Sequence record: OR805292.1
Direction: 5' to 3' (one strand)
Length of the DNA: 64,000 nt
In this document: positions 4,719-19,603 of the stretch, piece by piece
Position numbering within the stretch: the first letter of the stretch is position 1
Layout of the letters: every line of letters begins with the position of its first letter
The notes under the pieces: generated by a model
The model's input: the letters and a program-made list of their open reading frames with translations, nothing else
What the model was told of the DNA's origin: nothing
The model's database searches: none
Made by a program: the position numbers and the translations under genes

Positions 4719-4747
4719 TTGACAAATAGATAACTGCATTATATAAT
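4719..4747 (+). promoter_or_regulatory. Sigma70 promoter of ssb
   Basis: TTGACA (4719-4724), 17 nt, TATAAT (4742-4747): perfect consensus. Confidence 0.9.
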
Positions 4748-4837: not shown

Positions 4838-5824
4838 ATGGCTTCTCTTGCTGAACTACGTCAAAAATTAAAAGATCAAGAAACAAAACGTGGCACAAAA
4901 TCATCTGGCAGTGCAGATAAAAGTAATTTCCCATTCTGGGACATGAATGAAAACGACAGTGCTACTGTAAGATTTCTTCCTGATGCAAACACTGATAATA
5001 CCTTTTTCTGGGTAGAAAAACAACAAATTAAAATTCCATTTAGTGGCATTGTAGGTATGAATAGTAAACCTACAGTTGTTACTGTACCGTGTGTAGAAAT
5101 GTGGGGGGAATCTTGCCCTATTCATCAAGAAATCCGTCCGTGGTTTAAAGATCCTTCGTTAGAGAAATTAGCGCGTACTTATTGGAAGAAACGTTCTTAT
5201 ATTTTCCAAGGACTTGTTCGTAAGTCACCCCTTGTAGAACAAGAACTACCGGAGAATCCTATTCGCAAATTCACATTCGGAAGTCAGATTTTTAATCTAG
5301 TTAAATCGTCTCTATTAGACCCCGAAATGGAAAACATTCCCACTGATTATTTAAATGGTACTGATTTCCAGATAACTAAATTAATGAAGGGCCAATATGC
5401 CGATTACGCTACATCTAAATGGGCAAGGAAAGAATCTTCGTTAACTGAAGAAGAATTCCAAGCAATCCAAACATATGGTCTGTATGATTTAAGTAAATTT
5501 TTACCTGCTAAACCTGATGCAGAAGCATTAGCTGCTATATTCGAGATGTTCGAAGAATCAGTAGAAGGTAAAGAATATGATCCGCAGCGTTGGGGGAAAT
5601 ACTATCGCCCTTACGGGGTTGAAGTTCCTACTAATACTTCTGTAAGTGTACCTGTATCTAAACCAGAACCTAAGACTACGGTATCTAGTTCTTCAGTTAT
5701 AGAAGACGATAACGATGATCTTCCTTGGGAAGATACTACTAAACCCGTAGAGCCTGTCAAATCTGCTTCTAATGCGCAAGATATAATTGCGCTCATCCGC
5801 GCCCGCCAAAACAGCGGCAACTAA
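4838..5824 (+). CDS. ssb: Single-stranded DNA-binding protein (T4 gp32-like)
   Basis: TVRFLPD, PC...CP Zn ligands, YWKKRSY, DY..SKW motifs, acidic DDNDDLPW tail, position before uvsX. Confidence 0.9.
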   Translation: MASLAELRQKLKDQETKRGTKSSGSADKSNFPFWDMNENDSATVRFLPDANTDNTFFWVEKQQIKIPFSGIVGMNSKPTVVTVPCVEMWGESCPIHQEIRPWFKDPSLEKLARTYWKKRSYIFQGLVRKSPLVEQELPENPIRKFTFGSQIFNLVKSSLLDPEMENIPTDYLNGTDFQITKLMKGQYADYATSKWARKESSLTEEEFQAIQTYGLYDLSKFLPAKPDAEALAAIFEMFEESVEGKEYDPQRWGKYYRPYGVEVPTNTSVSVPVSKPEPKTTVSSSSVIEDDNDDLPWEDTTKPVEPVKSASNAQDIIALIRARQNSGN

Positions 5825-5829
5825 ATAGG

Positions 5830-5858
5830 GAGAGGGGATCGCTGATCCCCTCTCTTTA
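5830..5858 (+). terminator. Intrinsic terminator after ssb
   Basis: GAGAGGGGATC-gct-GATCCCCTCTC followed by TTT. Confidence 0.75.
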
Positions 5859-5931
5859 ATATAACCTAAAATAGCCAAAAAGTACAACTACAATGTTGGA
5901 AGGACGGCAGTATTATAAAAAAGGACATTTT

Positions 5932-6177
5932 ATGACAAAACCATTCGATATTTCTAAATTTAGAAAAGATATTACTAAAAGTATCACTGGCATTAGTACA
6001 GGATTTAATGACCCAACTATTTGGATTAGTACCGGCAACTATACTCTTAATTATCTCATTAGTAGCGACTTTAATAAAGGCGTACCTATGGGTAAAGTAA
6101 CTATGTTTGCTGGCGAGTCGGGTTGTTTGCCTGAAACTGCTAAAGTGAAAATTAGACTATCTAAGAAGCAATCTTAA
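5932..6177 (+). CDS. uvsX: UvsX/RecA N-terminal extein (64 aa) fused to 17-aa split-intein N-fragment
   Basis: ISTGNYTLNYLIS...GKVTMFAGESG, then CLPETAKVKIRLSKKQS-stop (Cys1 at 6124); AAGGA SD before ATG 5932. Confidence 0.92.
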   Translation: MTKPFDISKFRKDITKSITGISTGFNDPTIWISTGNYTLNYLISSDFNKGVPMGKVTMFAGESGCLPETAKVKIRLSKKQS

Positions 6178-6186
6178 CTGTCCAGT

Positions 6187-6226
6187 GTCTCCGTCGAGGA
6201 TAAATACTTTTATCTAAAACGGAGAC
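6187..6226 (+). promoter_or_regulatory. RBS-sequestering hairpin with embedded late promoter, upstream of the homing endonuclease
   Basis: GTCTCCGT 6187-6194 pairs with ACGGAGAC 6219-6226 (covers the GGAGA SD); inner stem 6198-6204/6209-6215; TAAATA at 6201-6206. Confidence 0.75.
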
Positions 6227-6229
6227 TTT

Positions 6230-7663
6230 ATGGGAAATTACAATGTTCTTTCTACAAAAAACTTTAAGAAGCTATGTAATGAGTTAAACATAGTAACGAT
6301 ATCAGAAAAGTACATTTCTGATATACGTAAGATAGAAGATTCTGCTAAGAGCAAAGTGGATTCTGCATCTCAGCGTATGATATTAACTATGATAACTGTG
6401 AAAGTTCCCGACTTATATGATGCATATAACAGATACTATCAGCTCAGAACAGATGGTATTAGTACAAAAACTCAAGACAGTATTTCTTATATTTTTGGAA
6501 AAGACTTCCTCGAATCTGTTAATTTACTAATCAGTAATAGATATAAAACTGCATTCCGTAAAGGAATGACAGTGGAAGAGGCATTTATAACACGTAATAA
6601 AGACTTTTCCAATAATGGTGTGTATTATAACCAGATGACTGATAAGCAAAAGAAACGTTTATCATTATTGCTTAGTGTGTATACACCAGAAAGGTTGGAG
6701 TTTTATAAAAAGACAATTTCGTTTTTTATTAAGTTAGATTTGACTAATTATGCAGGAAGAATGAAAAGACTGATGAAACTGGGATCTAGTACGTCTTTAT
6801 ATGCTAGCGTATTACGGTATGGTAAATCTGTCGGAAAAAGCACACATTCATCTGTATCTGCGGTAAAGAGAAACTATTTGCCTACTTCGATACAATATTG
6901 GATGGCAAAGGGGTTTGATGAAGATACTGCATTAGTGAAGATAAACGAACATCAACAGAAAGCAAGTGCCATGTCTTCCAAAAAACTAAAAGGCACTAGC
7001 GAATACTCTGTTCGATCAGTTGCATATTGGATTAAAAACGGGTATAGCGAAGAAGAGGCAAAAGGGAAAGTATCTAATATACAGAATACTTGGAAAAATG
7101 TATCTCAAGAAGAGCGTGATCGAAGAATAGAATCGTGGATGACTACAATGAGTCTTAAAACAGACGAGGAGAAATCTTTGATAAACCTTAAAAAAACTCA
7201 CAGCCCGGAAGGGATAATGGCAAGGACAAATTGCGATTATGATATTGCATTTAAGCAAAGCGTTGATTTTTTTAAGAAACGAAATAATTCTTCTAAAGTA
7301 TCTCAAGAACTATTTTGGGGAATTGCCGAGGATATCGATACCGATGGAGTTTACTTTTCTGAACTAAACTACGAATACCCTGTTATGGGGAAAATAGTAG
7401 ATTTCTATGATTCTAAAAGCAAAACAGTAATCGAATTTTATGGAAACTTTTGGCATGCAGATAGTACATATACTGATGACACACTGATATATGGAAAAAC
7501 TGCTAAAGAAATAAGAGAATCGGACATTTACAGAGAAACGTTAATTAGATCATCTGATTTGGTTAGTGATTTTATAGTAGTTTGGGAAAAGGACTTTAGG
7601 AAGAATCCGAAAGAAACAATTAAAAATTTAGTTAATATTTTAAATAATAAAAGGAAATTTTAA
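6230..7663 (+). CDS. Free-standing Vsr-like (PD-(D/E)XK, DUF559-type) homing endonuclease inside the fractured uvsX
   Basis: C-terminal VDFY...VIEFYGNFWH...D...VVWE motif, YW..G..E..A repeats, located between the split-intein halves. Confidence 0.8.
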   Translation: MGNYNVLSTKNFKKLCNELNIVTISEKYISDIRKIEDSAKSKVDSASQRMILTMITVKVPDLYDAYNRYYQLRTDGISTKTQDSISYIFGKDFLESVNLLISNRYKTAFRKGMTVEEAFITRNKDFSNNGVYYNQMTDKQKKRLSLLLSVYTPERLEFYKKTISFFIKLDLTNYAGRMKRLMKLGSSTSLYASVLRYGKSVGKSTHSSVSAVKRNYLPTSIQYWMAKGFDEDTALVKINEHQQKASAMSSKKLKGTSEYSVRSVAYWIKNGYSEEEAKGKVSNIQNTWKNVSQEERDRRIESWMTTMSLKTDEEKSLINLKKTHSPEGIMARTNCDYDIAFKQSVDFFKKRNNSSKVSQELFWGIAEDIDTDGVYFSELNYEYPVMGKIVDFYDSKSKTVIEFYGNFWHADSTYTDDTLIYGKTAKEIRESDIYRETLIRSSDLVSDFIVVWEKDFRKNPKETIKNLVNILNNKRKF

Positions 7664-7666
7664 TAA

Positions 7667-8938
7667 ATGGAATACATCGAAAAGGAAGTAACAGTTAGTG
7701 AACTGAAGTCTCTCTACAGTAGTAATGAATACGAAATTGAGTTAGACACACCAGATGGCTGGCAAAAACTGGGATCTTGGTTCGATAAAGGCCCTCTTAG
7801 TATGGTGACGGTAGAAACGCAGGATGGGTTAGTTACTAGATGTGCAGTAAACCATATGATCGAAGTGGTAGACGGATCGGAAACTTTTTGGACACTTGCA
7901 AAAGACTTGTACGAAGGCCAACAAGTGCTTACTGTAAACGGTGTCTCAACAATTAGTTCTGTAACTGAAAGTGGCATCGAAGAATGTTTCGATTTCGAAA
8001 TACTCCACGAAAATCATCGTTACTATGGTGATGGATTCTCTTCTCACAATAGTGGCAAATCGTATATAGTATCAGGAAACATTGTAAAAGATGCACAAGA
8101 AAAGGGAATTTTTGTTGTATTACTTGATTCAGAAAATGCACTCGACGAATCTTGGTTACATGCACTAGGTGTTGACACCGGACCGGAAAAAATGTTACGC
8201 ATCTCTGTATCGATGATAGATGATGTAGCAAAAATTATTAGTGATTTTGTTAAAGATTACAAGACTAATTATGCCGAACTACCTAACAATGATCGACCAA
8301 AGGTGCTTTTTGTTATTGACTCGCTCGGAATGTTATTGACACCAACGGAAACTGCACAATTTCAAAATGGTGATATGAAAGGAGATATGGGCAGGAAAGC
8401 AAAACAATTAAAAGCATTGATTTCTAACTGTACAAATATGTTCGGCAACTTAGACATAGGCCTTGTTTGTACTAACCATACATATGCATCTCAAGATTTA
8501 TTTCAGCCTGACGCTGTAATTTCGGGTGGCAGCGGCGCAGTCTATGCGGCGTCAATTGTAGTGGCAATGCAAAAGTTAAAGTTAAAAGAAGACGAAGCAG
8601 GTAATAAAATTTCTGAAGTAGCTGGCATTCGTGCAGTATGTAAAGTTGTGAAATCTCGATATGCAAAGCCGTTTGAGACAGTAAAAGTAAATATTCCATA
8701 TGATACAGGTATGAGTCCAATATCGGGTCTATTTGACTTGTTTGAAAAAACAGGTAAACTTGTAAAACAAGGCAATAGATATAAGTACATAACCAAGGAT
8801 GGTACTGAAATGCTGTATTATAGGAAAGAATGGAATGATTACGATAAACTAAAAGTAATTATGAATGAATTTACAGACGAAGACCTAGGCAATGTCGTAG
8901 AAGTGGAAGAGGGTCATTTAGAAGAGTTCGATGAATAA
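7667..8938 (+). CDS. uvsX: 128-aa split-intein C-fragment fused to UvsX/RecA C-terminal extein (295 aa)
   Basis: Block B CAVNH, block F CFDFEI, terminal HN (8045-8050) followed by Ser; then SGKS, LLDSENA, VIDSLG, TNHTY, ISGGSG RecA motifs. Confidence 0.93.
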   Translation: MEYIEKEVTVSELKSLYSSNEYEIELDTPDGWQKLGSWFDKGPLSMVTVETQDGLVTRCAVNHMIEVVDGSETFWTLAKDLYEGQQVLTVNGVSTISSVTESGIEECFDFEILHENHRYYGDGFSSHNSGKSYIVSGNIVKDAQEKGIFVVLLDSENALDESWLHALGVDTGPEKMLRISVSMIDDVAKIISDFVKDYKTNYAELPNNDRPKVLFVIDSLGMLLTPTETAQFQNGDMKGDMGRKAKQLKALISNCTNMFGNLDIGLVCTNHTYASQDLFQPDAVISGGSGAVYAASIVVAMQKLKLKEDEAGNKISEVAGIRAVCKVVKSRYAKPFETVKVNIPYDTGMSPISGLFDLFEKTGKLVKQGNRYKYITKDGTEMLYYRKEWNDYDKLKVIMNEFTDEDLGNVVEVEEGHLEEFDE

Positions 8939-10766
8939 ATTATGCGAAACAGATCGTATTAATATTATCAAATTACACTTCGATGATTTAAAATCTGTAT
9001 CTGAATTAAAGCAAATATACGGAGTCTCTTATGATGTCATTAAAACCATCATAAGAGATGAAACGAATCGTCTACCGTTGCAAGAAACTGATATAAAAAT
9101 TTTGAAATTTAAAAAACTTGTTTCAAAGGAGTTGTTATTTGAATTACATGTAATTAAAAAACAATCATTTAATGAAATAAGAAAGACTTATAAGATTAAT
9201 GAACTTCATTTAAAACAAGTGTTTAATGATTACGGAATACCAATTGAAAAGTGTTTATATACTGCTACTAACAAGAAGCGTAAAACAAAAAAGCCTGAAG
9301 ATTTTACTAAAGACTTTTTCGAACACTTAGTATATAACGAAAGACGAACAATTAGTTGGATAAAAAATAATTATAACTTTAATTATGAAGAACTAAAACA
9401 TCATTTAACACATTTAAAAATCGATTATACTAATTCGTTGCCACCTGCTGTAAAACATCAACAAGATAAAATATCTAGAGAAACCCTAGCAGAAGAATTA
9501 AAAATTAAATCTATTGTTGATATAATAAATGAATACGGAATTTCGAGAACTTATGTAGAAAGCGTTATAAAAGAATACAATATACAGTATTTTACAAAAC
9601 CGAAACATTCTATATTAAGTGGTAAAGAATCAGAAATTTATCGGATGTATTATGATGAATGTATGACTACATACCAAATAGCAGAAAAATTGGGAGTATG
9701 TCAATACACCATATGGAAAATAATGGCAGATAACGGATGGAAAACACGAGAACCGATTAAAAAAATTGATTTGATTTGGAATGATATAAAAGAAGAAGTT
9801 GTTAAATTAATAGACAACGGTTATACATTAGCTGCTTTATGTGAAAAATACGAAATAACATCTATTACTGAAAAGTTAATAGAAGAAGGTATAAAATATA
9901 CAAAGGGAAATATTTCTTCTGGTCATGCAGAAATATCTGAATATGTGCGTTCATTGGGATTTAATGTAATCGACAATGATCGTACTATTATATTTCCGCG
10001 AGAAATTGATATTTTTATTCCCGAACTTAACATAGGAATAGAATACAACGGATTATATTTTCATAGCACACGAACAGAAGGAAATGTAACAAAGCATAGA
10101 GAAAAATATAGCATATGTAAACAAAAAGGTATTCGTTTAATACAAATTTTTGAAGATGAATTTATTCATAAGAAAGAACTAGTAAAGAGAAAATTAGCGC
10201 ACATTTTAGGAAAATCTAATAATAAATGTTATGCAAGGAATTGTATAGTTAAAGAAATATCGGTAGCAGACAAACGAAATTTCTTTAAAAAATATCACAT
10301 ACAAGAAGATTCTGCATCCTCGTATGCATATGGATTATATTATGATAATGAATTGGTTTGTGCTATGTCTTTTCTTAAAAAGAAGAAATGTACAGAATTA
10401 GTTAGATATGCATCTTCTATGCACGTGATAGGCGGATTTTCTAAGTTGTTGAAATATTGTATTAATAATAACAAAATAGATGTTATAAACACCTATGCTG
10501 ATCTCAGATGGTCGAATCCGACAAATAATGTATATGTAAACAATGGGTTTGATATACTGTATGAGACTGATTTTAATTACACTTATGTGAGTAAAGAGGA
10601 TTTTTCAAAAAGGCTTAATAGGCAAAAATTTATGAAACACAAGTTGAAAAACATTTTATCAGATTTCGATAAATCATTAACAGAAGAAGAGAATATGAAA
10701 AATAATGGATTTTATCGAGTATACGATGCTGGCCATTTAAAATTGCAATATAAGGTTAATAAATGA
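8931..10766 (+). CDS. Putative homing endonuclease: HTH repeats, Vsr-like nuclease and C-terminal Hef/Mom-like (GNAT-fold) domain
   Basis: EIDIFIPELNIGIEYNGLYFHS...LIQIFEDE nuclease motif; C-terminal ELVRYAS...GGFSKL...TYADLRWS...VY...GF. Confidence 0.7.
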   Translation: MNKLCETDRINIIKLHFDDLKSVSELKQIYGVSYDVIKTIIRDETNRLPLQETDIKILKFKKLVSKELLFELHVIKKQSFNEIRKTYKINELHLKQVFNDYGIPIEKCLYTATNKKRKTKKPEDFTKDFFEHLVYNERRTISWIKNNYNFNYEELKHHLTHLKIDYTNSLPPAVKHQQDKISRETLAEELKIKSIVDIINEYGISRTYVESVIKEYNIQYFTKPKHSILSGKESEIYRMYYDECMTTYQIAEKLGVCQYTIWKIMADNGWKTREPIKKIDLIWNDIKEEVVKLIDNGYTLAALCEKYEITSITEKLIEEGIKYTKGNISSGHAEISEYVRSLGFNVIDNDRTIIFPREIDIFIPELNIGIEYNGLYFHSTRTEGNVTKHREKYSICKQKGIRLIQIFEDEFIHKKELVKRKLAHILGKSNNKCYARNCIVKEISVADKRNFFKKYHIQEDSASSYAYGLYYDNELVCAMSFLKKKKCTELVRYASSMHVIGGFSKLLKYCINNNKIDVINTYADLRWSNPTNNVYVNNGFDILYETDFNYTYVSKEDFSKRLNRQKFMKHKLKNILSDFDKSLTEEENMKNNGFYRVYDAGHLKLQYKVNK

Positions 10767-10963
10767 TTACAGATGTTGAAGCAATAAATGAAATTTGGGC
10801 TGCCGTGCGACCATATATTAAGTCATCTGAGCGCATTCATGCAGCGGATGCGTTTATAGAAGTTTTAGATGAATACGGAATGCTTGATGTAGATATTCAA
10901 ATGTTTGAAAAAGAACTTAAAATAGCAGCAAAAACACATTTAGGTGAAGCAGATGACGACTAA
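10763..10963 (+). CDS. Hypothetical protein
   Basis: 66-aa ORF coupled to neighbours. Confidence 0.55.
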   Translation: MITDVEAINEIWAAVRPYIKSSERIHAADAFIEVLDEYGMLDVDIQMFEKELKIAAKTHLGEADDD

Positions 10964-11279
10964 TTTAGAATTTAGTGACGAATTTCTATCAACTGTATCG
11001 TCGTTGAAAGCCAATATAGCATCCAAAAATAAAGATGCTGTCATAGAACAATTAGACAAATTGTTAGATATGGTAACAAAAGATATGAATGCGGTTATAT
11101 GGGTAATACAACCTGAAAATATTAATAACCTACATATACTATGTTCTGATTCATTTAATATTCCTATTAGTCAATTTAGACTAAAACGAAGAATACCGTC
11201 AAAATCTCAACGAGCTCATTTATTTTTAAAAGTAATTAGGATTGCACTTGCTGGAAAAGAAAATGAACAATTGGTATAA
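10944..11279 (+). CDS. Hypothetical protein
   Basis: 111-aa ORF in the operon. Confidence 0.5.
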   Translation: MKQMTTNLEFSDEFLSTVSSLKANIASKNKDAVIEQLDKLLDMVTKDMNAVIWVIQPENINNLHILCSDSFNIPISQFRLKRRIPSKSQRAHLFLKVIRIALAGKENEQLV

Positions 11280-11727
11280 CATTGTCTATGCAGATTTATC
11301 TAAGATACCTGATTTCATTTCTTTTTTTGAAAAAGAAATAGATATTTCTAAGTCTACAGAAATGTCTTTAAAGGGTAAAACGTTAGAGAAACATTGCGCA
11401 GAGTTGCCGGGCATAGTGGAGAATAGATTTGCACAGCTTCAAGAAATTGAAGCTGTACTAGAATTACTTAACATTCAGTATAAACAAGAAAAAAGCGACA
11501 GATTCAAATTTTATCTACAGCAATTTCCTAAAGCACTTTCTTCTAGGGATGCAGAGAAATATGCAGAAGGAGATCCACTTGTAGTAAACAGGGCAATATT
11601 AGTTAATGAAGTTGCATTGCTAAGAAACAAATATCTTTCGCTAATGAAGGGTTTAGATTCTAAGAATTGGATGGTAGGCCACATAGTTAAACTTCGTTGT
11701 GCAGGACTAGACGACGCACAAATTTAA
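11263..11727 (+). CDS. uvsY: Recombination mediator UvsY
   Basis: Helical protein with ALSSRDAEKY..GD and KGLDSKNW..GHIVKLR.AGL motifs, directly before uvsW. Confidence 0.85.
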   Translation: MNNWYNIVYADLSKIPDFISFFEKEIDISKSTEMSLKGKTLEKHCAELPGIVENRFAQLQEIEAVLELLNIQYKQEKSDRFKFYLQQFPKALSSRDAEKYAEGDPLVVNRAILVNEVALLRNKYLSLMKGLDSKNWMVGHIVKLRCAGLDDAQI

Positions 11728-11739
11728 ATAGGATTCGTA

Positions 11740-13191
11740 ATGGCAAAGGATTGCAAATTAGTAATAAAAGATGAAGTAAATATTGCATTTACTGGACTTG
11801 ATATAAACACTCGTAGAAAACTATCTGATTCGTTAAAATTCTTTTTACCTCATGCAAGACACCAACCTGCATACAAGTTAGGTAGATGGGATGGATGTAT
11901 TAGGTATTGTGATATAGCCGGACGTTCGTATCTTAATTTTTTAGATATACTTATTCCTATTGTAGAAAATAGTGGTTATTATATAACCATAGAAGATAAT
12001 AGACAACCGTTTTCGTGTAATTTTGAACCAATAGATGCTAACTCATATTCTCATCTTACTTGGCCTGTAGGACATCAATATGAAGGGCAGAATATTGTTC
12101 TACGGGATTATCAAGTAGAGGCAGTGAATAATTACTTAGCTAATACACAGAGTATAGCAACATTGCCTACTGGTTTTGGAAAAACATTAGTTACTGCTGC
12201 ATTAGCACATAAAGTAGAAAAGTATGGAAGAACAATAACAATTGTTCCGTCTAAAGACTTAGTTACCCAAACGGAACGGGATTTTAAAAACTTCGGATTA
12301 GATACTGGCGTTTATTTCGGAGATAGAAAAGAATTAGGCAAAACCCACACTATAGTTACCTGGCAAAGTATTGAAGCTATTTATAAACAAAGTAAAGCAG
12401 ACGAAAATGCATTGACATTAGAAGAATTCATTGAAGGGGTAGTAGCAGTAGTAGTCGATGAAGCACATACCATTAAGGGTCAATCATTAAAAGAACATTT
12501 AACTTCTACATTTGCTAATGTTCCCATTCGATGGGCTATGACAGGAACCATACCGGAAGAGGAACACGCCGCGGCTTCCCTTATTGCATGCATAGGTCCT
12601 GTTACAAAAACTGTGAAAGCAAAAGAATTGCAAGAAGCAGGAATACTTAGTGAATTGCACATAGAAATCCTACAATTAAACGATTATCATACTTCGCATC
12701 CGAACTATGCAGCCGAATTAAAATTTCTTACTACAGACCCTACTCGTTTAAAATGGCTAGCCGAACATATAAAATCTCAAGAAGGCAATACGTTAGTGTT
12801 AGTTGATAGGCTGTCGAGCGGAGAAGAACTTCTTAAGCATATACCCAATGCTGCATTTGTTAAAGGTGATTTAAAAAGTAAGGACAGAAGAACTGAATAT
12901 AAATCAGTTACATCAGATACAGATAAAATTATTATAGCAACCTTTGGGGTTGCATCTACTGGTATTGATATACCATACATACATAATGTATATTTATTAG
13001 AACCGGGGAAGTCTTTTATTAGGGTAATTCAGTCTATCGGTCGCGGTCTACGCAAGGCACCTGGAAAAGACTATGTATCTGTATTTGATATTACTTCTGT
13101 TGCAAAATATTCTGCAAGGCATTTAACTAAAAGGAAAAAATTCTATAAAGAAGCAGAATATCCATTTTCTGTAAAAAAAATAGATTATTAA
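11740..13191 (+). CDS. uvsW: SF2 helicase UvsW
   Basis: LRDYQ, PTGFGKT, VDEAH, MTGT, QSIGRGLR. Confidence 0.93.
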   Translation: MAKDCKLVIKDEVNIAFTGLDINTRRKLSDSLKFFLPHARHQPAYKLGRWDGCIRYCDIAGRSYLNFLDILIPIVENSGYYITIEDNRQPFSCNFEPIDANSYSHLTWPVGHQYEGQNIVLRDYQVEAVNNYLANTQSIATLPTGFGKTLVTAALAHKVEKYGRTITIVPSKDLVTQTERDFKNFGLDTGVYFGDRKELGKTHTIVTWQSIEAIYKQSKADENALTLEEFIEGVVAVVVDEAHTIKGQSLKEHLTSTFANVPIRWAMTGTIPEEEHAAASLIACIGPVTKTVKAKELQEAGILSELHIEILQLNDYHTSHPNYAAELKFLTTDPTRLKWLAEHIKSQEGNTLVLVDRLSSGEELLKHIPNAAFVKGDLKSKDRRTEYKSVTSDTDKIIIATFGVASTGIDIPYIHNVYLLEPGKSFIRVIQSIGRGLRKAPGKDYVSVFDITSVAKYSARHLTKRKKFYKEAEYPFSVKKIDY

Positions 13192-13192
13192 T

Positions 13193-13444
13193 ATGAATTT
13201 TTATCAAGACGGAATTTATATAAAATTAGATGCAGATTTAAATGAACAATCGAACTTATTTAAATTAAAATCAGAATTATATGTACATTCGTATCCTACC
13301 CCTGATTTTTATAGATATACCAAAAATGGTAAAACCATGTTAGGAGTAGTATATGTCGGTTCATTAGAAACTGTATTTCTTAATATTATTAGCGGAGACT
13401 TTGACAAAGAAAAATTTTGTGCTATAATAGAAAAATACAAATAA
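13193..13444 (+). CDS. Hypothetical protein
   Basis: 83-aa ORF in the operon. Confidence 0.5.
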   Translation: MNFYQDGIYIKLDADLNEQSNLFKLKSELYVHSYPTPDFYRYTKNGKTMLGVVYVGSLETVFLNIISGDFDKEKFCAIIEKYK

Positions 13445-13454
13445 AGGTGTAATT

Positions 13455-13958
13455 TTGAAAATTTTATTAACCGAAAATGAATCATACGAATTAGATAGAG
13501 TCCCAGACGACATAGAGGATATACGGTATTGTATATTAGATTGTAATGATAAATCTAATGTAGATTTTTACTTTTTGCCTCTTATATTTTTAGAAAGTTT
13601 TTATTCTCCCGCAGTTGTCCTTAAGATAGGAAAGTACAGTATACAAATGCCGTTAGATTGGTCTATACTAGTATGCGACGAAGAATATTCTGATCTAGAA
13701 GTAGTACCACTTACTAGTCTAAATGATAGGGGGTTTCATACAATAGTATTTAATCCACTAAAACACATGGTGCCTGTTCCTTCTGAAATAACAATAACTA
13801 GTGTATTTACTGAAGTAAAATGGTATTTCCCTAAATTAAAAAGTGGTGCTGTCCTAGTTATTCCTTTAGAAGACGGACCTAATCCGAATTGTGCATTGTT
13901 TGTAAAAGAAGGGAATAAAATTCCTGATCCTATAGATATAGCAGAGTTATTTAAATAA
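13455..13958 (+). CDS. Conserved hypothetical protein
   Basis: 167-aa ORF, TTG start with SD, coupled to the next gene. Confidence 0.6.
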   Translation: MKILLTENESYELDRVPDDIEDIRYCILDCNDKSNVDFYFLPLIFLESFYSPAVVLKIGKYSIQMPLDWSILVCDEEYSDLEVVPLTSLNDRGFHTIVFNPLKHMVPVPSEITITSVFTEVKWYFPKLKSGAVLVIPLEDGPNPNCALFVKEGNKIPDPIDIAELFK

Positions 13959-14425
13959 TGGCAGAAGAAAGCATTTTACCGCTTTGGATGGAATTACAAG
14001 CATTAGATTATAATGATAGAGATTTTTATGACAAGTTAACTGATGAACAGAAAAAAGTATTTTCATCGTGGATTATAATGAGATATTCTAGTAATATAAT
14101 CGGTGATAATGCAGATTGGGGTCTTATAATGACCAATGATATTGTAAATGTAGATTTTTCATTAATGTATAAACATCCTAAACTGCAATGGATGCTATTG
14201 TCGTTGTGTGGAACTGGAAGAAAAGAACAACGTAAATGGATTGCCCCAAATAAAAAGAAAAAAAAGAATCCGAGGAAAGAATTTATTTTTAAAATTCATC
14301 CAAACGCAAAAGATGACGAAATTGATATGCTTGCAGATTTGTACACTGATGCAGAATTAAAGGATATTATGTTATCCTACGGATATGAAGATAAAGAAAT
14401 AAAAGATATTTTAAAGAAGAAATAA
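13958..14425 (+). CDS. Putative clamp-loader small subunit (T4 gp62-like)
   Basis: WIIMRYSS...TNDIVN...KHPKLQW...KWIAP pattern resembles gp62; replication-gene context. Confidence 0.45.
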   Translation: MAEESILPLWMELQALDYNDRDFYDKLTDEQKKVFSSWIIMRYSSNIIGDNADWGLIMTNDIVNVDFSLMYKHPKLQWMLLSLCGTGRKEQRKWIAPNKKKKKNPRKEFIFKIHPNAKDDEIDMLADLYTDAELKDIMLSYGYEDKEIKDILKKK

Positions 14426-19563: not shown

Positions 19564-19603
19564 TAGTAATAGTAGATAAATATAACGAATAGGGGATACT
19601 GAT

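Follow-up and report, generated by a model that had tools for sequence, protein, structure and literature searches.

The window analyzed here, the whole stretch of 64,000 nucleotides formed by bases 1–64000 of sequence record OR805292.1, comes from Pseudomonas phage Cassandra (Arenbergviridae, Wroclawvirus), a 288-kb PA5oct-like jumbo phage with 33% G+C and P. aeruginosa PAO1 as its host, and the element in question is a hairpin at the start of a homing endonuclease gene that fractures the recombinase gene uvsX. A first-pass annotation of this DNA, made from the letters alone, had drawn on T4 systems for comparison; the phage is not a T-even, as evident from the identity of the record and from the 99.4–99.8% identity of ten further PA5oct-group records to Cassandra over positions 5800–9000. 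T4-like replication and recombination genes of Cassandra include those for a gp32-like protein and the UvsX-like recombinase, as found in our searches, and for clamp loader, primase and helicase according to the annotations. Every gene from 4838 to 10766 lies on the plus strand, so that the endonuclease gene is co-oriented within that unit. The features of the uvsX locus that matter for the following are these:

5932–6177, plus strand: N-terminal piece of uvsX (uvsX-N), with 64 extein residues ending in GESG, a predicted 17-residue N-intein (CLPETAKVKIRLSKKQS, 6124–6174) and the stop codon (6175–6177).
6187–6194, plus strand: 5' arm of the outer stem, GTCTCCGT, complementary to the Shine-Dalgarno region and located upstream of the promoter box.
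6198–6215, plus strand: inner 7-bp stem-loop bearing the promoter box, with 6198–6204 facing 6209–6215 and a loop at 6205–6208.
6199–6206, plus strand: GATAAATA, candidate gp55-type late promoter box, a full motif match with a predicted transcription start at A6212.
6219–6226, plus strand: 3' arm of the outer stem, ACGGAGAC, which holds the Shine-Dalgarno sequence GGAGA (6221–6225); the endonuclease ATG is at 6230.
6230–7663, plus strand: predicted 477-residue free-standing homing endonuclease, with a helical N-terminal region and a Vsr-fold nuclease domain (residues 353–476).
7667–8938, plus strand: C-terminal piece of uvsX (uvsX-C), with a predicted 128-residue C-intein (7667–8050) ending in SSHN, followed by the extein from SGKS onward (8051–8935), which is the RecA/UvsX core.

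In the outer stem, GTCTCCGT and ACGGAGAC form a perfect 8-bp complement, and in the inner stem GGATAAA faces TTTATCT in 7 bp that include one G-U pair (6198/6215), closed by a loop of 4 nt. Both stems had been proposed in the first-pass annotation, the outer one as burying GGAGA, and their coordinates turned out to be correct, with RNAfold arriving at the same fold; the TAAATA that it had placed at 6201–6206 is indeed there, four of its bases belonging to the 5' strand of the inner stem and the other two to the loop. The minimum free energy structure and the centroid structure are identical and correspond to the two-tier hairpin 6187–6226, which has a folding energy of −22.8 kcal/mol (z = −4.87), a stability reached by none of 200 dinucleotide shuffles, and which is retained when folded in a 231-nt context. 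An 8-bp inverted repeat alone is unremarkable at 33% G+C, as we estimate that a few dozen will occur per 64 kb by chance; what goes beyond chance is the energy and the placement of the hairpin. A search of the region against Rfam returned no match except for a chance sub-threshold hit to U2.

The accessibility of translation starts was compared on the basis of the opening cost, defined as the free energy needed to make positions −14 to +3 single-stranded within an RNA spanning −70 to +20, for 468 predicted starts of Cassandra. The endonuclease start costs 17.0 kcal/mol to open and thereby ranks fifth of the 468 (98.9th percentile; genome median 4.9 kcal/mol), and three of the four starts ranking above it are apparent terminator hairpins at doubtful small open reading frames or starts. 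The starts of uvsX-N (2.3 kcal/mol, 8th percentile) and uvsX-C (2.6 kcal/mol, 14th percentile) open readily, in line with the idea in the first-pass annotation that the endonuclease, and not the two uvsX pieces, is silenced. The homing-endonuclease gene at 246484 was left out of the scoring; the other six Cassandra homing-endonuclease genes, which were scored, all gave lower values than 17.0 kcal/mol, namely 4.1–6.5 kcal/mol and, for the gene at 113444 with an uncertain start call, 9.9 kcal/mol (92nd percentile). Start masking is thus strong and specific to the endonuclease gene at 6230–7663. As a further observation on neighboring elements of this kind, a second, Hef-like homing endonuclease gene (8931–10766; 611 residues; phrog_3339, expect value (E) 5e-95) overlaps the last 8 nt of uvsX-C and has an unmasked start (4.4 kcal/mol). 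The gene for DNA polymerase B (genome 87805–93031; 23805–29031 in our locus L004) is likewise fractured by a homing endonuclease gene, the start of which is not masked by a hairpin (5.5 kcal/mol); the MIJ3 paper has already described the split PolB intein of this phage group.

The second component of the hairpin is the box that it carries. The octamer GATAAATA was first spotted by reading the sequence upstream of virion genes. It occurs 33 times in the 288-kb Cassandra genome, 24 copies being intergenic, against a background of 8%, and 23 of the 33 being both intergenic and 10–100 nt ahead of a start on the same strand; single-base variants and composition-matched scrambles gave only 1–4 of 26–91 copies in such a promoter position. 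About 27 sites precede genes, mostly by 16–46 nt with a modal gap of 22–24 nt, and the genes 3' of these sites encode tail sheath, tail tube, baseplate wedge and hub proteins, many proteins annotated as 'virion structural protein' and one other homing endonuclease. Further sites on the plus strand of the window are at 19575, 25488, 25933, 27516, 43177 and 62810. Alignment of the flanks of the 27 sites revealed an A at the sixth nucleotide after the box in 19 of 27 cases, followed by T in 14 of 27, while conservation resembling a −35 element was not seen at these 27 sites. An 8-bp box lacking a −35 element agrees with the published description of T4 late promoters, in which the box extends from −13 to −6 and position −13 is the most variable. 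The phage also encodes a gp55-type sigma factor, Cassandra_0452, which matches phrog_12791 'sigma factor for late transcription' (E 7.6e-82) and phrog_234 (E 7.8e-18). The genome-wide behavior of GATAAATA therefore supports its assignment as a candidate gp55-type late promoter box. A full-text literature search for the octamer yielded nothing but irrelevant primer matches.

The copy at 6199–6206 lies 23 nt from the endonuclease ATG, the modal value of the set, and the predicted start, A6212 followed by T, has the preferred bases. The embedded late promoter of the first-pass annotation is thus borne out insofar as a box with a full match to the phage's own motif is present; the relevant element is GATAAATA at 6199–6206 rather than just TAAATA. 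Since the 5' arm at 6187–6194 lies upstream of the box, any transcript initiated from the box would be devoid of this arm, whatever its exact start, and an RNA beginning at 6212 has a computed opening cost of 1.3 kcal/mol. The T4 consensus TATAAATA was tried as the positioned late motif of Cassandra and rejected: it has 11 copies in the window versus 21.5 expected, and only 2 of 36 copies genome-wide are intergenic and upstream of a gene. A separate observation on GATAAATA is a divergent pair of boxes that forms a palindrome at genome position 238058–238085 (L007, 24058–24085), between a baseplate hub gene and a gene for a protein of 798 residues.

To what extent this design is shared was examined in a comparative set of seven metagenomic loci, retrieved via the endonuclease protein, and further IMG/VR loci, resulting in 13 distinct loci including Cassandra. 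More distant endonuclease loci in other host genes (L029–L099) were left out of the statistics because their start calls were unreliable, with open reading frames running in frame into intein coding sequence. All 13 loci have the same order of a uvsX-N piece (77–92 residues), a gap of 34–78 nt, the endonuclease gene and uvsX-C, and the endonucleases of the 12 other loci are 32–42% identical to the Cassandra protein. Eight loci had scores for all three starts, and in each of the eight the endonuclease start was costlier to open than both uvsX starts; the opening cost of the endonuclease starts in the 13 loci had a median of 12.7 kcal/mol versus 4.9 kcal/mol for 137 other genes from these loci (Mann–Whitney P 2.4e-7). 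Boxes of the form [T/G/A]ATAAATA were found in nine of the 13 loci, with nine copies in 780 nt upstream of the endonuclease genes versus 0.10 expected, an about 90-fold enrichment relative to 22 copies in 165 kb elsewhere in the same loci (Poisson P 3.6e-15); the loci share descent, and both P values overstate their independence. The box reads GATAAATA in Cassandra, L020 and L021, TATAAATA in L013, L014, L016, L018 and L026, and AATAAATA in L023, while GCTAAATA occupies the equivalent place in two further loci, L011 and L015, as well as in a second endonuclease gene of L023.

The stems of these loci vary in sequence and cover 8–19 bp, for example 8 bp in Cassandra, 12 bp in L011, 17 bp in L015 and about 18 bp in L016. 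In each locus, the Shine-Dalgarno sequence and/or the AUG is paired with an arm that is located upstream of the box or overlaps it; in L013, L022, L023 and L026, the partner of this arm is the AUG region instead of the Shine-Dalgarno sequence. These differing stems with retained pairing represent compensatory change, as judged here from the predicted folds and opening energies of each locus and not from a formal covariation score, the 3' arms being out of register in the MAFFT alignment, in which the conserved 5' block does align. Covariation in homologous loci had been named in the first-pass annotation as a way to check the proposal, and the 12 other diverged loci with their different compensating stems answer in the affirmative. 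The closest relatives cannot contribute here, as positions 6150–6260 are 100% identical in all 11 PA5oct-group genomes and hence uninformative on covariation.

Some individual observations add to this comparison. In L023 (4690–4750), a locus of a metagenomic phage, uvsX is fractured twice, and the second endonuclease gene, which sits further into uvsX, is preceded by an 18-bp perfect stem with GCTAAATA at its top, in which CCCUCC pairs with the Shine-Dalgarno sequence GGAGGG (−36.3 kcal/mol, z −6.85). In L064 (2490–2750), only about 75 C-terminal residues of the endonuclease gene are left, and uvsX-C is intact; the loss of hairpin and box along with the 5' part of the endonuclease gene shows that the control region belongs to the endonuclease cassette and not to uvsX. 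Directly after the uvsX-N stop, the block TAATTTTTAA.CCAGT.TCTCC (window 6178–6196) is conserved across diverged loci, and its CCAG often pairs with a CUGG that coincides with the endonuclease AUG or follows it immediately, thereby constraining the second codon.

Transcription into the locus probably originates upstream of the hairpin, from an element that we consider together with a second one:

4719–4747, plus strand: sigma-70 consensus promoter TTGACA-17-TATAAT (12 of 12 matches), preceding the gp32-like gene.
5830–5854, no strand assigned: palindromic, G+C-rich, terminator-like hairpin of 11 bp, 3' of the gp32-like gene.

The promoter at 4719–4747 is the likely source of an early/middle RNA that reads through into uvsX, and the hairpin at 5830–5854 is probably a partial terminator. 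The PA5oct paper describes promoters with TTGAC and TATAATA elements and a need for host RNA polymerase. RNA evidence came from four PA5oct RNA-seq runs of one 2020 study, used as assembled Logan contigs, which are unstranded and for which depth is a poor measure. Contigs of all four runs cover uvsX-N, the hairpin and the endonuclease gene, with DNA carry-over being possible, and in three runs a single contig extends from the gp32-like gene through uvsX-N, hairpin and endonuclease gene into uvsX-C. In run X4, the depth falls from about 6,000–14,000 to about 1,400 at the hairpin 5830–5854, an approximately 5- to 10-fold drop by this weak measure, and changes little from there on through the locus (1,384, 1,110, 826 and 975). 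The contigs agree with read-through transcription into the uvsX locus and are neutral on a start at 6212.

The hairpin, its selective masking of the endonuclease start, the promoter-like box within it, the phage's own late sigma factor and the recurrence of the design in diverged loci are established in silico. From these findings we infer a temporal translation switch for the endonuclease gene, a reading that we hold to be probable with regard to the start site, its late timing and the translational repression. Early and middle RNA from the sigma-70 promoter would read through the partial terminator and carry both arms of the hairpin, such that the 5' arm at 6187–6194 would pair with the Shine-Dalgarno region at 6219–6226 and mask the endonuclease start. 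Ribosomes would load at the open starts of uvsX-N and uvsX-C and pass over the endonuclease start, and the VidaL-type split intein would ligate the resulting UvsX pieces. At late times, host RNA polymerase equipped with the gp55-type sigma factor would recognize GATAAATA at 6199–6206 and start near A6212. The late RNA, lacking the 5' arm, would have a free Shine-Dalgarno sequence and allow endonuclease synthesis, and it would carry uvsX-C as well.

Several observations weigh against such a switch. The hairpins of L014 and L019 are weak, and L019 also lacks the box. The promoters reported in the PA5oct paper are sigma-70-like only, which leaves GATAAATA as a candidate box in this family. The X4 contig spanning 6112–6538 crosses the hairpin and shows no rise in depth downstream of it, depth being a weak measure here; the spacing between GGAGA and the ATG is short (4 nt), and the shared descent of the loci lessens the force of the statistics given above.

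Other explanations are less well supported than the temporal switch. The hairpin might act as a constitutive attenuator that keeps translation low at all times, with GATAAATA unused and a trickle of nuclease made from read-through RNA as the stem breathes. The flat contig depth after 6212 and the weak, boxless hairpin that the family has in L019 would be in line with this idea, which we nevertheless consider unlikely, as the box fully matches a motif that behaves in a promoter-like manner elsewhere in the genome, shows the most common spacing to the ATG and the favored A where transcription is predicted to begin, and has counterparts that are about 90-fold enriched upstream of the homologous endonuclease genes. 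This enrichment would likewise be left unexplained if translational coupling operated instead of, or besides, a late promoter, that is, if ribosomes stopping at the uvsX-N stop codon (6175–6177), 3–9 nt before the stem, melted the base of the stem. Such coupling could account for the stop-to-stem distance of about 5–11 nt in six of eight loci inspected and for the conservation of the post-stop block. With the usual ribosome footprint, a ribosome terminating at the uvsX-N stop would reach just to about 6183–6187. Going by this general figure, the extension helix and possibly a single pair of the main stem would lie within its reach, and the pairs formed by GGAGA would lie outside it; in L011, moreover, the distance is 26 nt. 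Taken together, this makes coupling very unlikely.

We see still less reason to regard the structure as an RNase III site or a terminator that divides the uvsX-N message from the downstream RNA, with the occlusion of the Shine-Dalgarno sequence being incidental. The perfect stems of 17–19 bp in L015, L016 and L023 do have the size of an RNase III substrate, but the Cassandra helices comprise just 7–8 bp each, and it is the pairing of the Shine-Dalgarno sequence or AUG, not the stem length, that is conserved across the loci. As for a terminator, the stem of Cassandra and its relatives is not followed by a U-tract (UUU, then AUG), a terminator scan made no call at the hairpin, and the RNA contigs pass through it; a processing or termination role thus appears highly improbable. 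The idea to which we assign the slightest chance is that of a DNA operator, in which a protein, for instance the endonuclease itself as an autorepressor, would recognize the inverted repeat around the box, and which could coexist with the switch. I-TevI provides a precedent by binding an operator that overlaps its late promoter, inner inverted repeats around the box recur in Cassandra, L014, L020 and L021, and the divergent-box palindrome at genome 238058–238085 may be viewed in the same light; yet the outer arms vary between loci while the complementarity to the Shine-Dalgarno sequence stays, which is a signature of RNA pairing.

The temporal switch would govern a protein that sequence searches alone could not classify, as the 477-residue open reading frame had no match in Pfam, in PHROGs, or in phmmer and profile searches of the PDB. 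Its homologues at 36–42% identity include two that are labelled very-short-patch-repair endonuclease by their sources. An AlphaFold model was obtained with a mean predicted local distance difference test score of 84; full-length Foldseek results were weak, and structural re-alignment of the domain was decisive. Residues 353–476 align with Vsr (1cw0, Z 11.1), with DUF559 (3hrl, Z 10.9) and with the catalytic domain of I-Bth0305I (3r3p, Z 10.9, 97 of 97 residues). Among 18 homologues, E382, D391 and H409 are invariant and D432 is near-invariant, which fits the composite EDxHD motif defined for the Vsr-like homing endonuclease family. The assignment as a Vsr-fold (EDxHD-type) homing endonuclease is thus well supported by predicted fold and motif, and gives a class to what the first-pass annotation had simply called an endonuclease. 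A side observation concerns its spread: between Cassandra and PA5oct, positions 6112–8172, a segment that begins ahead of the hairpin and extends through endonuclease gene and C-intein to about 120 nt of the extein, contain zero differences where about 18 would be expected, and all flanking genes differ at 6–13 positions per kb. This difference-free 2-kb tract points to a recent homing event accompanied by co-conversion.

The two uvsX pieces are recognizable as halves of one protein. uvsX-C matches RecA (E 2.2e-10) and the UvsX-like phrog_97 (E 1.7e-46), and its C-intein matches the VidaL intein structure 6vgv over 127 residues (E 4.5e-37). With the junctions GESG|CLPET... and ...SSHN|SGKS, splicing is predicted to restore the Walker A motif GESGSGKS, and the intein is atypically split in a VidaL-like manner, with a very short N part (17 residues) and a long C part. 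The record places the start of uvsX-N at 5893, which depends on a 1-nt indel at 5917 that is not present in PA5oct; on this ground, and because AAGGA precedes the ATG at 5932, the latter is more likely to be the start. In the PA5oct annotation, the uvsX-N piece is listed merely as a hypothetical protein. The locus has the layout of a fractured gene, with N-intein piece, endonuclease gene (6230–7663) and C-intein piece in one place and orientation. The endonuclease stop codon (7661–7663) and the uvsX-C ATG (7667) are separated by a 3-nt gap, so the reading frames do not overlap. Such an overlap is present in the relatives L013, L014 and L016 and is frequent in the fractured-gene family, where it is not a defining feature. 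Our search of the literature on this phage group found no mention of the split uvsX, the hairpin or a late-promoter consensus.

Fractured genes with split inteins and intervening Vsr-like or GIY-YIG endonuclease genes were described in marine metagenomes by Dassa et al. 2009 (NAR 37:2560; PMC2677866), who found hairpins ahead of 15 of 16 endonuclease genes, 10 of them with TATAAATA, two conserved motifs forming the stem, and in 15 loci an overlap of the 3' end of the endonuclease reading frame with the downstream piece. The Cassandra locus resembles these in the order of N part with N-intein, co-oriented free-standing endonuclease gene and C-intein with C part, in the hairpin ahead of the endonuclease gene, and in the nuclease fold. 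The loci of Dassa et al. are mostly cyanophage-like and affect gp41, NrdA/J, DnaE and IMPDH, with UvsX being merely a neighboring open reading frame, whereas in Cassandra it is uvsX of a cultured Pseudomonas jumbo phage that is fractured, with a 17-residue N-intein, a GATAAATA box that matches the phage's own motif, and a 3-nt gap in place of the downstream overlap. On every defining feature examined, the Cassandra locus fits this fractured-gene family. A relative in kind is mobE, located in the nrdA gene of Aeromonas phage Aeh1 (Gibb & Edgell 2007, 2009; cited through reviews, among them PMC2988022), for which a hairpin hides the ribosome binding site and a late promoter limits translation to late times. 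In both systems, an essential gene is interrupted by a free-standing endonuclease gene that is transcribed together with the two resulting pieces; mobE encodes an HNH enzyme, its NrdA pieces assemble without an intein, and its regulation was demonstrated experimentally, whereas that of the Cassandra gene is deduced.

The parallels extend to I-TevI, I-TevII, I-TevIII and segB, where a structure sequesters the ribosome binding site on early or middle read-through transcripts and RNA from a late (or middle) promoter lacks the inhibitory arm. These encode GIY-YIG or HNH enzymes and, except for segB, reside in introns, and the rationale given for I-TevI, protection of intron folding, is inapplicable to a fractured gene. 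In T4, the same general device of hairpin-masked starts on early transcripts serves the late genes e, soc, 49, 25 and 26, which are situated within early/middle transcription units and are ordinary phage genes, not mobile ones. VidaL (6vgv/6vgw) matches Cassandra in the kinship of the C-intein and in its short N-intein; it is of metagenomic origin and serves as a protein-engineering tool, such that a natural locus of a VidaL-type intein, with endonuclease and control region, is now at hand in a culturable phage. The mechanism as such is already known, as textbook knowledge for T4 and bioinformatically for the marine fractured genes, and no new principle is put forward here.

What the locus offers is an experimental setting, since P. 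aeruginosa PAO1 supports the growth of PA5oct-like phages and RNA-seq data for them are available; it could become the first genetic test of the fractured-gene package, here made up of VidaL-type split intein, EDxHD endonuclease, silencing hairpin and candidate late promoter. As a by-product, the candidate late-promoter consensus GATAAATA, with its approximately 27 sites, becomes available for a family from which only sigma-70-like promoters had been reported. We tentatively entertain the further idea, possible although we would not count on it, that the endonuclease cassette moves its own silencer and promoter module between phages, with the first bases of the box being retuned to the 'dialect' of the resident late sigma factor; a match in 'dialect' between the box of the cassette and the genome-wide box is seen in Cassandra. 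If this were true, the box would report on a mobile element adapting to the transcription of its host phage, and the PA5oct family would provide the first genetically tractable case of a fractured, intein-rejoined gene with this switch.

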